Made by a program: the position numbers and the translations under genes. A stretch of 19,676 nucleotides of DNA from Paramoeba atlantica (taxonomy: Eukaryota; Protista; Discosea), in NCBI GenBank assembly GCA_977017575.1, contig CDRNVI010000209.1, positions 1 to 19,676 on the forward strand, given 5' to 3'. The notes below the pieces were generated by a model. It made no database searches. It saw only the letters and a list, made by a program, of their open reading frames with translations, and had not been told where the DNA came from. The first letter of the stretch is position 1. Each line of letters starts with the position of its first letter. This document shows positions 3,480 to 11,524 of the stretch, piece by piece.

Positions 3480-3637
3480 CTTGTGTTTCTTGACTCAAGC
3501 CAGGAAACTCATCTTTTTTCTGCAAGGAGGAGATGTAAATAAGGAAATATCCAAATATATAATATTCAAATATGTATATCACTTTATATAGAATCTTGAC
3601 TCTGTAACTTGCAATTTTGGTGAAATTGGTTGTTACC

Positions 3638-3920
3638 TGTCAATTGGCAATAGTCTAAGGCTTGCTTGTGGTCTTTTTGTTCCAATGATGATGTCACTTT
3701 TTTGATCTATTTCTCCCCTTTGACGAATTGCTGATCCAATTCCCAAACCTCCATTCTTCCTTTTGGTGAACTTGGTGACTTAGTCCTTTGCCCTCTGCAT
3801 TCTGTGAATAGTTAGTGCTAAGTACTGAAGTCAAAATAAAGCTCTCACTCTTGCTTTTCCCTGATTTGATTTCTGAGTTTATTTCTCAGTTTTGTCTTTG
3901 CACCATTTCTCTGTTTGTTA
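3638..3920 (+). repeat. 5' LTR (copy 2), TGTCAATTGG...TTTGTTA
   Basis: 10 substitutions versus the 3' LTR, all transitions. The left boundary is fixed by the TSD and the right boundary by loss of identity with the other copies. Confidence 0.96.
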
Positions 3921-3948
3921 GATTAAGAGTCTAGTGTCTCTACCACTG
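3921..3948 (+). promoter_or_regulatory. Primer-binding site complementary to the 5' half (D-loop to anticodon arm) of tRNA-Lys(CUU)
   Basis: The reverse complement CAGTGGTAGAGACACTAGACTCTTAATC resembles the eukaryotic tRNA-Lys-CTT segment CAGTCGGTAGAGCATGAGACTCTTAATC. There is no TGG (CCA-end) PBS next to the LTR. Confidence 0.8.
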
Positions 3949-3958
3949 TAGTATCACA

Positions 3959-5063
3959 ATAAACAAAACAGTTGTGAAAGTGCTGAAGCTAACCGAGACG
4001 AACTATGATACGTGGACCGAAATGATGTCTTACTTGTTCAACTCTAATGGTGGTCACAAGTACATCAACGAGTTGATACCAATTGCAGACATTGAGGAAC
4101 AGGCCGAGAGGGAGATCTTTACGAACACAGCCATGCTTATTGTAGCGCATGTTCACTTTGATCTCCAGAATTTGATTCGTTCTGACCAATCAGATCCCAA
4201 CTCCTGTAACTCCTCAAACCTTCTCCCATCGACACACCCTCAAAACTTTGTTTTACATGCTGGTCATGGATGATTTCGAATCAATTGAAGCGTTTGTCCT
4301 ACAGATCAAATCCACTGCAGAGAAGCTGAATTCTCTCACAGAAAAACAAGCTGGTTGAGAACATCATATCTCCAAATATGAGTGATATGAGCAATATGTT
4401 AAGAGAGAAATTTTCTCTAAGCTCAGTACGCATACTGCTCATTGACCTGATTCTCTTTGACCTTCTCCTTCTTCTTCTTCTTCTTCTTCTTCTTCTTCTT
4501 CTTCTTCTTCTTCCTCTGCTCCCCCCTCTTCATCCACTCCAAGAGAGTCTAAGTTTAAGTCAAGACAAGAATAGGATCCAACCGAAATCCGAAATTCCCT
4601 TTTCTACTATTTCAAGAATCACTTTGATATCTTCAAGACCTTCTTGAAGGAGCTTGGCTTTGAGTTGGCTGGGTATGTATCTGATGATGATAAACTCTCT
4701 GTGCTTTTAGTCAGTGTTAAAGCAAACTATGAGATCATGTACAACCATCTTGTGGGTCGTGAGCATTTGACATTCCAGTCTGCATCAGAATATTTAATTC
4801 AACACACAACTGATTCATGTTCAGACACAATCAACCGAATGGAAGAGAAGAAGAGACACAATCCAGACAAATCTCCAAAAGAAAATTTGTCTCATAGGGA
4901 TGTAGATAAACCGAAGAAATCTTGCCAAAAGTGTGGAAAGAAACACCCACTGCATGTTTGCTGTAAGCATAAGCCGAAAAAGAATTCGGACGATATTTTC
5001 CTTTGTGCTTTTGGAGACAAGAAAGAGACTGTTTCCTCTTCTTCTCACCATGCCACCTGTTAG
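3959..5063 (+). pseudogene. gag: Copia gag, with one frameshift and several premature stops
   Basis: KLTETNYDTW N-terminal motif, UBN2-like ESIEAFVLQIKSTAEKLNSL and VSDDDKLSVLL, and knuckle CQKCGKKHPLHVC. Frameshift between about 4175 and 4240; in-frame TGA/TAG codons. A start at 3959 (ATA, presumed ATG>ATA) is inferred. Confidence 0.85.
4468..4512 (+). repeat. (CTT)15 microsatellite, encoding poly-Ser in the gag frame
   Basis: Direct reading of the sequence. Confidence 0.95.
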
Positions 5064-8000
5064 TTGATTTTGGATAGTGGTTGTTCGTGGCATGTTGTTG
5101 GAAAGAAGTTGTTTTCCAATCTGTTTGATATCCATGAGGTTTCTCCTCACATTATCAGTCTTGTGGATGCAAAGACTTACACCTCCAACCATGCTGAGAC
5201 TCTGATTGTGCAGCCTGTGAAAGGTGGCAAAACACTTCACATTACTGATGTTACATATGTCCCTGAGATTAATGATTGTTTCATTTCTATCAGTCAGTTA
5301 GCAAAAAAGAATTTAATTTCAATCTTCAAGGGTGATATTTGCCAAATCTGTTCGAAGAATGATGTTCTTATTACTGCGAAACACACAGGTGGTTTGTATC
5401 GTGTTGAGACTTTCAAAGTTGTGGCTGATTCCCTTCTTTGCTCAGATAGCAAGCCTTCACCAACTGAGAAGAACAATGAAACTATTATGGATATTCATTC
5501 CAAACTTGGTCATGTCTCTGGCCCTGCTTTATTGAAAGCTATTGTTGATCATTATATTCATGGGGTTGATCTTACTAAGGTCGACCAAGTCTTGAAGAAG
5601 TGTCCTGTGTGTTGTGAGGCTAAATCCAAAGCTCATAAGAAACTTGGTACCAAACCTTTTTTTTTTTTTTTTTTGAGGCAAACTTTATTCAATTAGTAGT
5701 TTTTAATCTAAGCCATTTGAATTACATTAAATTATGTTTGTTTTTTTAACCTCTAACAAGAGGTGAAGTTTTAAACTTCAGCTTAGTTCAGTCGGTCTTT
5801 ATGCTGAACTTTAGAACTTCTACAAGTTCAGGCTGGAGGATGCACATCAGAAGGGAGAATAATCCAAAGCTCCTTCCAAGGGAATTTATCCTCAACTTTT
5901 TAGCAAACAGGGCTGAAATGTAACCTGTTCTGATTTTCACACTTCTTCAAGAGCTCCTCACTCCAATCAAATCACTCTACAGCACCAGAAAAATTTTCTT
6001 TAATATCGAAAAACTGGGATTTGAACTCGCCCCCCCAGGGTTGGACATAGTTGAATTTACAACTAAACTACGGGCACCAACCCAACTTGGTACCAAACCC
6101 TCTTGTGCTCAATATCCCTTGGATGTGACACAAGCTAACTCTAGTGGTCTTCTATCTCCTACAATGAAAGGTAATTGTGGTTTTCAAGTTGCTATTGATG
6201 TGTATAGTTGACGGAAACATGTTGATTTGTTCAAAGTCAAGACAGAGAACCCCCACCACATAAAGGGTTATATTGAGGCTGGAGAGTTGGAAACTGGTAA
6301 CCTTGCTCGAACACTTCGAACTGACTGTGCTGGTGAATACGAGTCTGCGTGGTTTACCAAATATTTGAAGGATAAAGGTATACATCAGGAGTTTTCTGTG
6401 CCTCATTGTCAGTCGCAGAATGGCCTTGCTGAGCGTGCGATTGGTACACTCTCAGATATGGCGAATTGCATGTTAGTTGAGAGTGGACTTCAAAGGAAAT
6501 ACTGGGGTTATGCGGTTAAGTATGCTGCCAAAGTTTCTAATGTCACTCCAACATCTGCTTTGAATGGTTTGACGCCCTATGAAATGTATTATGGACACCC
6601 ACCCAAGATTACCATGTACCACACCTTTGGTTGCCTCTGCTTTCATCAAGTACCCAAAGACCAACACAAGAAATTTACACCTAAGTCTGAACGCTGTTTG
6701 TTTCTTGGCCTTTCCGACAATCATGAAGCTTTTATTGTTTTATGGCTTGATGATAGTCGTGTGATGATATCACGAGATGTCAATTTTATTGACAATTCCT
6801 TCCCTCTTACCTCAAAGTCTACTTCTGTTTCTGATGATGATGATGATGATGATGAAGATGATGACCATGAAGGTGAAGTTGATGTTTCCATTTTTGGTTC
6901 TAAAGAATACGAGAAAGAAGAGAAAGATGATGAAGATGATGATCTGACTGTTAACCTCACTCCTGGCAAGATTACCAGGTTGGTCTATTTACCACCTCGT
7001 AAATCCCACAACCTCTCGAAATTTGAAGCTGATGTTGAAGTAATTTGGAAGAAAAAGAGAGTTTCCATGCCTAATCCCAGATATGCTAAGAACACTAAGG
7101 ATTCTGCTAATCCAATTTTTGATATATCTGATCCAAATCTTGATTTCCTTTTGGCTGCTTCTGTTGTTGATGATGCCCCCAAATCTTATGCTGCTGCTAT
7201 GAAAAGTAAGGATGCTAAGAAGTGGAGACAAGCTGCATGTGAGGAGATTGAGGCTCTACTCCATAACAGCACGTGGGAAGTTGTTCCGATTCAGGATGTC
7301 CCTGCTGGCACTCAAATTCATAACCCGGTTTGGAGATTCAAACAGAAATTGGATGGCCGTTATAAAGGACAGATGTGCTTTAACAGTAGTGACCAATTGA
7401 GAGGTGTTGATGTTGAGGAATCATCTTCACAAGTTCCCACCATGGAAACTGTACACACTATTATTACTGCTATGGTACAAAAGACAGCTCGCATTGTTCA
7501 AGCAAATGTATTCAACACGTTTTTACATGCTGAAGTGGATGTGGATGTCTATATGCACCACCCCCCTGGTTTTCCTGGGCCTCCTGGTACTGTATGTAAA
7601 ATTAAAAAGGGTCTGTATGGTATGCGTCAGGCATCTCTTCTTTGGCAAGAAAAGGCACACAAAACTTTTGTTTCTATGGGATTTGTACGCTCTAAGAAGT
7701 GCAAATGTCTTTACTTCTACAAGTATAATGGTCATTGGTGTGCAATTCTCATTTATGTTGATGATCTTTTGATGGCTTCGAGTTACCTACCTTGGATTGA
7801 TAAAATACTCACGACTCTTGATAAACGCTTTGGTATTCACTATGTTGAGGGTCTGGGTCTTTACCTTGGTATTAAGTGTGATCACGATTCTATAAAGAAA
7901 ACCATCCACATGTCCCAACCACACATTGTCGAAAAACTCACTTCTCTACTTCAAACTCAGGATCTTAAGCCTACCAAATCTCCTGCTAATCTCAAAATTA

Positions 8001-8710
8001 CACTTGTAAAGGATGCTGGTGATCCAATTGATATTTCAAACTACCAATCTGCGATTGGGTTGTTGTTGTGGCTTGCTCGGTGTACTCAACCTGACATCAT
8101 GTTTCAAGTAATTATGTTGTCACAGTTCCAAGTTGATCCTCGAACTGAACATTGGGGTGTGGTTAAACATTTGGTTTGATACCTTATGGGGACTTTGCAT
8201 TTGGGAATTACCATCAACAAAGTGAATAGTTCTAAATTTATTGCAATTTTTGACGCAAATCATGCTGATGTACAACTACAAAGAAAATCTGCATCTGGAT
8301 GTTTTGTTTTTCTGAGTGGCACACCTGTGGTTTTTACAACAAATAAGCAGAAATGCACTGCGTTGACATCTGCTGAGGCCGAGTATGTATCCATGAGTGA
8401 TGGAATGAAGAAAGTTGCTTGGATTGCTGGTCTGCTTGCTGAATTGAACCAAAATCTGGGTTTTGACTATCCTATAATCCCGGAAGTTTGGACTGATTCC
8501 CAACCTGTGATTGCTTTGTTGGAAAAGAACGATCCTGAAAATACACGTTTGCAACATATTGATATTCGATGTCATTGGATTTTGGAATATATTAAGAAAA
8601 GTCAAGCTGTTGTTAAATGGATTCCTTCAGAGTTCAATCTTGCCAATCTATTAACCAAGTCTTCAAGAAACCTTGCTTTATTCAATCGTTTGAGAGACCA
8701 TATCATGTGA
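5064..8710 (+). pseudogene. pol: Copia pol (protease, GAG-pre-integrase, integrase, RT, RNase H), disrupted by a SINE and nonsense/missense changes
   Basis: Motifs LILDSGCSWH (protease), HSKLGH...CPVC, RTDCAGEY and QNGLAER (integrase), KGLYGMRQA and IYVDD (RT), SAEAEY and HIDIR (RNase H). Removing the SINE and one TSD restores the frame. TGA sits at conserved Arg positions (YS*R, LV*YL), and several conserved Asp read Asn (QAN, QANV, LANLLTK). Confidence 0.95.
5657..6083 (-). mobile_element. tRNA-derived SINE, 427 bp, inserted by target-primed reverse transcription
   Basis: 16-bp TSD AACTTGGTACCAAACC (5641-5656 and 6084-6099) and an A18 tail preceded by AATAAA. A-box-like TAGTTTAGTTGTAAA (6070-6056) and B-box GAGTTCAAATCCC (6028-6016) have tRNA-like spacing. 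Confidence 0.9.
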
Positions 8711-8724
8711 CAGTCACTCATTGT

Positions 8725-8731
8725 GGGGGAG
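8725..8731 (+). promoter_or_regulatory. Polypurine tract GGGGGAG
   Basis: Directly 5' of the 3' LTR; the equivalent tract precedes LTR copy 1. Confidence 0.85.
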
Positions 8732-9014
8732 TGTCAATTGGCAATAGCCTAAGGCTTGCTTGTGGTCTTTTTGTTCCAATGATGATGTCACTCTTTTGAT
8801 CCATTTCTCCCCTTCGACGAATTGCTGATCCAGTTCCCAAACCTCCATTCTTCCTTTTGGCGAACTTGGTGACTTAGTCCTTTGCCCTCTGCATTCTGTG
8901 AATAGTTAGTGCTAAGTACTGAAGTCAAAATAAAGCTCTCACTCTTGCTTTTCCCTGATTTGATTTCTGAGTTTATTTCTCAGTTTCGTCTCTGCACCAT
9001 TTCTCCATTTGTTA
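8732..9014 (+). repeat. 3' LTR (copy 3), TG...TA
   Basis: Followed directly by the TSD TTACC; retains 4 CpGs, versus 1 in LTR2 and 0 in LTR1. Confidence 0.96.
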
Positions 9015-9270
9015 TTACCCACTAAGTGTCACCCCTCTTCCTTTTCATTCTCACTTTTTCCAATTCATTTGAATTCCCCAAGTGTCTTTTCTTGAACTCT
9101 TGAAACCCAAATAAACCACCATTTACAAAAGGTGATATCAGCAATTTTAATAACATCATTAGCTGATGATATCAAAACATGATTATCTTGATGTTGAAAG
9201 TAAAAATGCTCTCCCTTTCAAACCCATGAGAATCCTTGTGTGGGAATTGGGTATTTTTCTGGCCTCATTA

Positions 9271-9556: not shown

Positions 9557-11524
9557 GTGAAGATGAACGATTTGATTTTTGAGTTTGCTCAAGATGAGAA
9601 TAGTCATGTTCATTTCAAGAAGGAAGAAAAAAGTCGAAAACGAAAACGAAAAAGTGAAAACCAAGGATCAGCTGAAAAAGTGGAGCAGGAACAAACGATC
9701 AAAACCCTCGAAAGAGACTTGTTTTGTGTTTCTTCAACATCAGGTTTCCCCAAGAACCCAGCAAATACCTTCTCATCTCATTTTTTCCAAGTTAAGGGGA
9801 AGATTGAGGCGATTCAAAACTTTCACAAAACTGCTCGTCATCTTGTTTATCAGGAGCTCGACACTCAAGTTCAATCGACTCTTAAAAACTTGCGATCTCA
9901 AAGTGACAGTTACTCATCTCCATTGAAAGAACGAATTCGTTTATTGAATATTGAAATTGAAAACAAAAAAAAGATATGTTCTCTTCCTGGGATGTTGTCA
10001 GAAGAAGAAAAACAGTGTGAACTACTTGCAATCGCTGAAGACGAAGAGTCAATTTCGTTTTTGAAGGACTTTCTCTTTGAATTTGAAGCTGAAAATCGAT
10101 ATTTTGGAAGGTATTTGGAAGAAGAGCGAAGATTTTTGGAGAGTGGACAAAATATAAGCAAAAAGGATCAATTGCCTCCAAACCCACCCCAAACCTTGAA
10201 TGGACAAAAATGGTTGCTGAATATGATGAAAGCTTTTTGTGGCCACGAAACGTTTGATGGAATGAAATTCCTTGAATTGTGGATAAATTACGTCATTTTA
10301 AAGTGAGGTTTTTTCGAAACAAAATTTGAGACTGCAATGAATATTGTTGAAACTGTTCTTGATGAATTTGCCAAAACTCAAATTCAAAATGAATTGAAGG
10401 AAAATAAGTGGGTGCCAGAAAAAGTACGCTCTCAGATTGGGGTTGGGGGGAGGTCTCAACAGAAATGCCACGATGAACTTAATCTCTTGCTTTTCTATCG
10501 ATATTCTAACGAGAATACACAATTTCGAGAAGAGGAAAAACGGTTGGAAGGATTGAACAGTGAGTCATTGCGGGACGAATGGAAATCAAACTTTTGTAAG
10601 TAAAAGATACCGAAGAACTCAGCTCATTTAATCTTGAGAATTGATTTAATGGCAAAGTGGTGGGCTGACTTTCAAGATTTCTCTTCACGTTCATCCTCAT
10701 CGTTGAACTCACCTTCATCTTCCTTACCCTCCTCATCTTCATCCTCTTCCTCTTCCTCTTCCTCTTCCTCTTCATCTTCTTCTTCTTCACCTTCCTCTTT
10801 CCTTTTGTTGAAATCTCGTCTGGAGGAAGAATATGAGAAAAGCTCCACAAAAGAACGATTTGAGAAGAATCACTCATTGAAGACCAAATCATTGAAGTTG
10901 CTGGTCTTTGCATTTTCTAAATGCAAAATTCCTTTTCGATTCCGAGTTGGTGATGATGGAAATTGGAAATTGGGGCGATACACGGGCACTCAAATGCGGC
11001 AAGTATTGGAGAATGTCGAAAGAATCTTTTGTTGCAATCCAAATCGACCATCCACAACATCATTGTGGGTTACCTTTCGAGAATGTTTTCAAATGCTGAC
11101 AAGTGACCCCCCAAAAGGGTCAAATCGTGAAGCAGTCACCATTAATTTTGAAAAAAAAATTGGTTCTTGGAAGGAAAGCTTCACGGATTGGGGAGGGGAG
11201 ATGGGTTCCACCTGGCGAATTTATTTCCACATTCTGGAAGCTCACGCAGCGGATACGTATCGTCAGTTTGGGAATTTGCGACCTTGGGCAGCAGAAGCTG
11301 GGGAGCAGGTCCACTACTTGGATCGTATGCACTTCTATCGGAGTAGCCAACGAGGTTCTGCAAATCTGAACACTAAAGTCCTCACAACTGGACTTTGTTT
11401 TCGATACAGCCATTCTTTAGCAAATCAATATCAAACCTCTTTGGATATCCCACAAGAAATTCGAGCAACCCAAACGAATTTAAATCAAAGAAGTGAAGTG
11501 GTGACGGACCCAAAATTGATTTGA
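9557..11524 (+). CDS. RAG1/Transib/Chapaev-like (CMC-Transib group) transposase; one frame broken by TGA at 10304 and TAA at 10601
   Basis: Three listed ORFs share one frame. The C-terminal part reads HLILRI...IPFRF...W...TG...LW..F...W...F...IYFHILEAHAADTYRQFGNLRPWAAEAGEQVH, paralleling RAG1 [32 protein letters not shown] (H-x4-H zinc pair plus catalytic Glu). The N-terminal D/D and CxxC motifs were not clearly recognised. Confidence 0.7.

Follow-up and report, generated by a model that had tools for sequence, protein, structure and literature searches.

Which RNA could have primed reverse transcription of the LTR retrotransposon that lies in the window, that is, in the whole stretch of 19,676 nucleotides analysed here? 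The question is raised by a block of 28 bases directly behind the 5′ LTR of this element, which is complementary to the inside of a tRNA with a CUU anticodon. We compared the block with the tRNA genes of the host genome, with other copies of the element, with other LTR elements of the same assembly and with elements from environmental sequences, and weighed the primer that these comparisons point to against other explanations of the match.

The element and its chromosomal setting

The window element has the structure of a Ty1/Copia retrotransposon, with two direct LTRs, a 5-bp duplication of the target site and a purine tract before the 3′ LTR (Table 1). The edges of the LTR were set by the 5-bp duplications of two independent insertions, TTACC in the window and ATTAA in a full-length copy from another ENA assembly (L084). 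Pfam analysis of the stop-free pieces detected Pol_BBD and gag_pre-integrs at 5064-5693, followed by SH3_retrovirus and then RVT_2 at 6212-8176, and this domain order identifies the element as a Ty1/Copia LTR retrotransposon (Pseudoviridae). Its integrase core is too decayed for Pfam scoring. The nearest outside relatives of its reverse transcriptase are anonymous contigs with an identity of at most 37%, and the contigs of three distant protein relatives (P0003, P0004, P0005) end short of any 5′ LTR. Since the two LTRs are 96.5% identical, the start codon is lost and the reading frames are broken, the window copy is a dead, fossil element.

Table 1. Features of the Ty1/Copia element, in positions of the window
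Feature	Position	Strand	Evidence
Left target-site duplication, TTACC	3633..3637	+	identical 5-mer at 9015-9019
5′ LTR, 283 bp, TGTCAA...TTGTTA	3638..3920	+	273/283 identical to 8732-9014; LTR recurs in other copies
Probable PBS core	3921..3934	+	exact complement of tRNA-Lys(CUU) positions 27-40
Putative PBS extension	3935..3948	+	alignment, shuffle test, duplex prediction
Position of the gag start codon, ATA in the window copy	3959..3961	+	ATG in L002, L003 and L084
Decayed gag-pol, three reading frames	3959..8710	+	stop-free pieces; Pfam
Polypurine-like tract, GTGGGGGAG	8723..8731	+	read directly; immediately before the 3′ LTR
3′ LTR	8732..9014	+	96.5% identical to the 5′ LTR
Right target-site duplication, TTACC	9015..9019	+	matches 3633-3637

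The window is a chromosome end, because its first 745 bp or so are perfect CCCTAAA repeats of the telomere type (1-745; TTTAGGG type). A subtelomeric motif of about 40 nt, gacaaccaaagataaccatacttttgagtaatttaaacc, occurs twice, at 745-790 and at 1112-1150. Between the telomere repeats and the element lies a third copy of the window family (1335-1755), which is 5′-truncated and consists of the last ~140 bp of pol and a full LTR with 95-96% identity to the other two LTRs of the window element. Immediately in front of this truncated copy is an A-run (1321-1336), and the telomere repeats are about 600 bp away. Within its gag region, the window element holds a microsatellite, (TTC)n/(CTT)n, with a length of about 90 bp (4430-4547), and a CT-rich tract resembling it is also found at 10678-10816.

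Pairing of the block with the host tRNA-Lys(CUU)

The block begins one base past the last LTR base, A3920, and its 28 bases (3921-3948) read GATTAAGAGTCTAG TGT CTCTACC ACTG. A search of the genome assembly (45.7 Mb, 248 contigs) revealed 28 tRNA-Lys(CUU) genes with the anticodon stem CTAGA/TCTAG, of which 24 are identical and four near-identical (an example is L005:1489-1561:-). ARAGORN placed the anticodon of this tRNA at position 34, so that the numbering of the gene equals the standard tRNA numbering. When the host tRNA was aligned to the block, its positions 27-40, CTAGACTCTTAATC, matched the first 14 bases without exception. Beyond this core, T3935 stands opposite G26 as a G·U pair and G3936 is paired with C25, while T3937 is bulged and has no partner in the tRNA. 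CTCTACC (3938-3944) is then paired with positions 18-24, C17 of the tRNA is bulged with no window base opposite to it, and ACTG (3945-3948) is paired with positions 13-16. The pairing thus involves 27 of the 28 bases, with 26 Watson-Crick pairs and one G·U pair, and it forms a two-part structure, not one continuous helix.

The preliminary description of this DNA had proposed, from the letters of the window, a complement of 28 nt to a CUU tRNA that abuts the LTR and pairs over an unusual length. Its place at the LTR and its extent were borne out, but an unbroken complement was not, as the G·U pair and the bulges divide it into a 14-nt exact core and a box that pairs with the D arm. The same description had noted the absence of a TGG-type site, which would match a tRNA 3′ end, and this proved correct: no such site follows the LTR before 4013, where the first TGG lies inside gag.

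The duplex predicted for the block with positions 1-40 of the tRNA has an energy of -44.5 kcal/mol, in a model whose pairing would be weakened by t6A37 and other tRNA modifications. When the core was kept and the extension was shuffled, the energy was -28.6 +/- 3.1 kcal/mol, and the observed value was reached in none of 300 shuffles. An anchored alignment of the extension against its shuffled versions gave a p value of about 0.003.

The block is an antisense, partial complement of a tRNA and not a tRNA gene. A whole-assembly search with the full 28-mer, allowing up to three mismatches, returned element copies only and no tRNA gene. The sole other Lys(CUU) isodecoder found (L004, with the stem CCAGA, in a cluster of nine tRNAs on C53) does not match the core. 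Two candidate identities for the site were rejected, as ARAGORN found no tRNA in the window and an Rfam scan of 3850-4020 with E values up to 10 gave no match to an RNA family.

Lys-type sites in related and unrelated elements

The window family is low-copy in the genome. The full-length copy L084 has an intact ATG, and its 28-mer is identical to that of the window, whereas the core contains one mismatch in the C199 copy (L002) and three in the truncated C148 copy (L003). Core mismatches in the four copies of the family accordingly number 0, 0, 1 and 3, and not one of the four has lost CTCTACCACTG. Every other copy has the same site at the edge of the LTR and none has a conventional site of the tRNA 3′-end type.

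The exact 14-mer of the core was found 49 times in the genome, 28 times in tRNA genes and 21 times elsewhere, although only about 0.3 occurrences are expected by chance in 45.7 Mb on both strands. Reading of the flanks revealed that all 21 non-tRNA sites directly follow LTR ends of the form ..CA or ..TA and are antisense to the tRNA. Since neither their upstream nor their downstream sequences can be aligned with each other, these sites represent at least seven families. Thirteen of the 21 are followed on the same strand, 3.3-5.2 kb downstream, by an RVT_2 match, and the one of them on C219 is accompanied by an open frame of 1682 aa. Pfam gave no match in the gag-region ORFs of the other Lys-site families, so that Copia identity there rests on the RVT_2 coordinates. 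No RVT_2 match was found downstream of families A and B (C140, C163:9242, C199:4700, C143), which may be non-autonomous or truncated. Four copies of one Lys-site family (L044, L045, L068 and L077, on C140, C163 and C199) have a T-rich leader that contains no long ORF, and again no RVT_2 match is found downstream; this family may be a non-autonomous LTR element with the same primer.

The site also recurs outside the assembly. A metagenome scan with a 19-mer, ACAGATTAAGAGTCTAGGC, gave no matches. A second scan, of JGI metagenome contigs, used a 16-mer made of CA and the 14-mer and gave 77 matches; five or six of these were in Copia elements, and the majority were due to bacterial tRNA-Lys genes or to chance. 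The environmental Copia elements with the site are L100, L110/L172, L127, L129 and L140. Their order is pol, purine tract, TGTT...CA LTR, site and gag, and G-rich tracts precede the LTRs of these relatives as they do in the window element.

The bases behind the core follow a pattern in these elements. The complement of the D stem, (G)CTCT, often comes after the core, and in most cases a base other than C faces G26. An exception is L127, in which the complement runs through G26 to G22 over 19 contiguous bases. Many of the families with the Lys-type site have 0-3 bases between the core and the D-stem complement, and these bases avoid C opposite G26. Family C continues directly with GCTCT and skips G26; family D has G or A opposite G26 and then GCTCT GCC CTG; family E has TGA GCTCT, L100 has CAT CTCT and L129 has AGTGA CTCT, beside the TGT CTCTACC ACTG of the window family. 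In the C188 family, GATTAAGAGTC is followed by a 7-nt spacer and then by CTCTACCGA, which is the exact complement of tRNA positions 16-24. The complement reaches into the D loop in the window and C188 families, and it is only in these two that the shuffle tests of the extension were significant; in the others they were marginal or not significant. The truncated copy L003 keeps the 11-nt box intact, which at its divergence of ~16% would occur by luck alone with a probability of ~15%.

In eukaryotic tRNAs, G26 usually carries the modification m2,2G, which pairs with U and not with C. The U, rather than C, that the window family has opposite this position would suit a modified G26. The D-arm box may possibly be a functional second contact, by which a two-part site shaped around the modified G26 receives the unfolded 5′ half of the tRNA, and we put this forward tentatively. 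If it is true, the two-part site would explain why the exact pairing ends at position 27, and it would provide a sequence-level handle on how such elements choose their tRNA. Alternatively, the extension could be a scar, formed if synthesis of the plus strand continues into the primer and falters where bases are modified. No paper describing a D-arm extension of this kind was found in our incomplete coverage of the literature.

The probable primer, alternative readings and precedents

Taken together, we consider that 3921-3948 is probably the fossil minus-strand PBS of a hemivirus-type, i.e. half-tRNA-primed, Ty1/Copia element. As is characteristic of this type, the site lies directly against the 5′ LTR, and its complement is an internal segment of the tRNA that ends in the anticodon stem at about nucleotide 40; a 3′-truncated tRNA-Lys ending near this nucleotide is well supported in silico as the putative primer. 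The match to the host tRNA and the retention of the site in the family copies likewise favour the earlier suggestion that tRNA-Lys was the primer species of this lineage. According to this reading, the abundant tRNA-Lys(CUU) of the host would be cleaved within the anticodon stem, on its 3′ strand, which would yield a 5′ fragment ending at C40 or possibly at U41. The fragment would anneal to the element RNA immediately 3′ of U5, and its 3′-OH would start minus-strand DNA synthesis. In the window family the pairing would not stop at the 14-nt core but would also reach the D stem and the D loop. Later steps would follow the standard pathway of LTR elements, namely strand transfers, plus-strand priming from the polypurine tract and integration with a 5-bp duplication. 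We infer from the sequence the physical use of a cleaved tRNA as primer, and along with it the cleavage itself, a cutting enzyme, the exact 3′ end of the primer and a role of tRNA modification.

The tRNA-Lys(CUU) could have been bound but with a primer end other than C40, if it was cut after positions 41-43 or if a precursor or unmodified tRNA was used; one or two ribonucleotides left by RNase H would then have given rise to the last LTR bases. In line with this possibility, the terminal A of the LTR (A3920 in the window element) is able to pair with U41 in each of the families, and the window family could reach 16 contiguous pairs, as its T3919 and A3920 match A42 and U41. However, most families have C in front of the terminal A, and C cannot pair with A42, and half-tRNA priming of the published hemiviruses starts at the 3′-OH of nucleotide 40 (PMC1181622). 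A different end is thus improbable, although the sequence does not fix position 40 against 41 or 42, because the terminal LTR bases can also pair with the tRNA.

We regard it as very improbable that the block is not a PBS at all but a target of silencing by tRNA fragments or a signal for packaging or dimerisation, in an element that was primed by itself or by another RNA. Targeting of the PBSs of LTR elements by tRNA fragments is indeed known. The block, however, directly adjoins the LTR end in all cases, at the position required of a primer, and the 38-nt leader before gag contains no other candidate primer site. Self-priming of the Tf1 type was rejected, as no LTR word of 7 nt or longer is complementary to the site. 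It may also be asked whether the match arose by chance, or stems from a piece of a tRNA gene or pseudogene that was captured and has no function, given that the window holds a single copy and that dinucleotide shuffles of the window gave a match with up to two mismatches in 22 of 200 cases. But the match in the window is exact, and the 21 exact non-tRNA copies, all antisense and all at the LTR ends of different families, contrast with the small number expected. This explanation is effectively refuted by the genome-wide count, the placement at LTR ends and the recurrence of the site in environmental Copia elements.

A probable PBS in two parts has counterparts among known elements. Ty1 contains boxes that can pair with the T and D arms of tRNA-iMet, and the primer site of Ty3 is in two parts. 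The window family resembles both in that a short core PBS is joined by additional stretches complementary to the same tRNA elsewhere along its length; it differs from them in that they use the 3′ end of a full-length tRNA, whereas its own second box directly follows the core and is complementary to the D arm of a 5′ half. As for primers made from part of a tRNA, Candida Tca2 uses a fragment of tRNA-Arg.

Hemivirus is defined in the ICTV profile by a short tRNA segment as primer (PMC8515867). Hemivirus-type elements such as Drosophila copia, Ty5, Osser and 1731 share with the window family the Copia superfamily and a PBS that pairs with the anticodon stem-loop and is flush with the LTR (PMC1181622; PMC8515867). 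Their tRNA is the initiator tRNA-Met, whereas the candidate here is the elongator tRNA-Lys(CUU), and the window family adds about 13 pairs with the D arm. The preliminary description had cited half-tRNA priming with iMet and with Arg; the former is indeed published, but the list was incomplete. In plants, 1/2 tRNA-Met is used by Osser, Bryco and Gymco-II and 1/2 tRNA-Ile by Bianca (PMC6317226), and Copia families of the rust fungus Puccinia use the anticodon loops of tRNA-Tyr, Ile, Asp, Asn and iMet (PMC10886601). These non-Met elements are similar to the present ones in that the primer tRNA species differs between Copia lineages, and different in that Lys(CUU) is not among the species named in the two papers.

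That a tRNA-Lys primer would be new for Copia, as the preliminary description supposed, is contradicted by the work of Donnart et al. 2017, in which ATTAAGAGTCT, an "internal region of tRNA-Lys", is given as the PBS of the fungal FunCo1 Copia clade (PMC5445492). This motif is present at 3922-3932, inside the 14-mer core, and the primer species is therefore not new for Copia. FunCo1, which belongs to filamentous ascomycetes (Pezizomycotina; PMC5445492), is like the elements described here a Copia lineage with a tRNA-Lys-type site next to the 5′ LTR. The present genome, unlike those of FunCo1, is non-fungal-looking and has TTTAGGG telomeres, and the comparison with FunCo1 is drawn on the PBS motif and its place at the LTR. 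The paper devotes one sentence to the site and calls it "classical", with neither a D-arm extension nor a check against the tRNAs of the host (PMC5445492). The half-tRNA mechanism proposed here is of an already known kind, and the only detail that is modestly new is the two-part pairing that avoids C opposite G26.

The anticodon arm of tRNA-Lys(CUU) is a primer choice that has seldom been documented, and the precedent for it is the one sentence on a fungal clade. As read from these sites, its use would now reach into a protist-like genome, where at least seven Copia families have the Lys-type site, and into several uncultured eukaryotes that have it too. What is added is a comparison with the tRNA genes of the host itself, the distribution across multiple families and the D-arm extension. 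The two-part pairing around G26 offers a small, testable lead on primer selection. There is also a consequence for annotation, as tools for LTR elements that seek only complements of tRNA 3′ ends would report such elements as lacking a PBS.

A probable second half-tRNA primer and the genome context

Another Copia family of the assembly (C158:60349-60362, L092 position 135; also L093-L096), which includes the best RVT_2 match of the genome, has an LTR end of the form ..TTAAC[A/G] followed by GATTAGAAGTCAGC, the complement of the anticodon arm of tRNA-Arg(UCU). The Arg-TCT genes of the host match this site over 12 contiguous nt (positions 29-40). Judging from this match, a second half-tRNA primer species, Arg(UCU), is apparently used in the same genome. 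The occurrence of Lys-type and Arg-type sites within one genome supports the notion that half-tRNA priming is a flexible strategy that may switch between tRNA species.

A tRNA-Lys(CUU) variant with changes in the acceptor stem is present in just two copies, one on either side of the C158 Copia element (L020 at C158:58685 and L021 at C158:66310). Both copies lie within a 456-bp inverted repeat whose arms are 96% identical. As to the assembly as a whole, HSP90 genes form long tandem arrays with a period of 2587 bp, and these are found only on low-numbered contigs (C12, C48, C88, C90). All Copia RT matches and all tRNA-Lys genes with the CTAGA stem are on C137 and above (C137-C230); the isodecoder with the CCAGA stem is on C53. 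The assembly may hold two different eukaryotes, in which case the host referred to here is the partition from C137 upwards.
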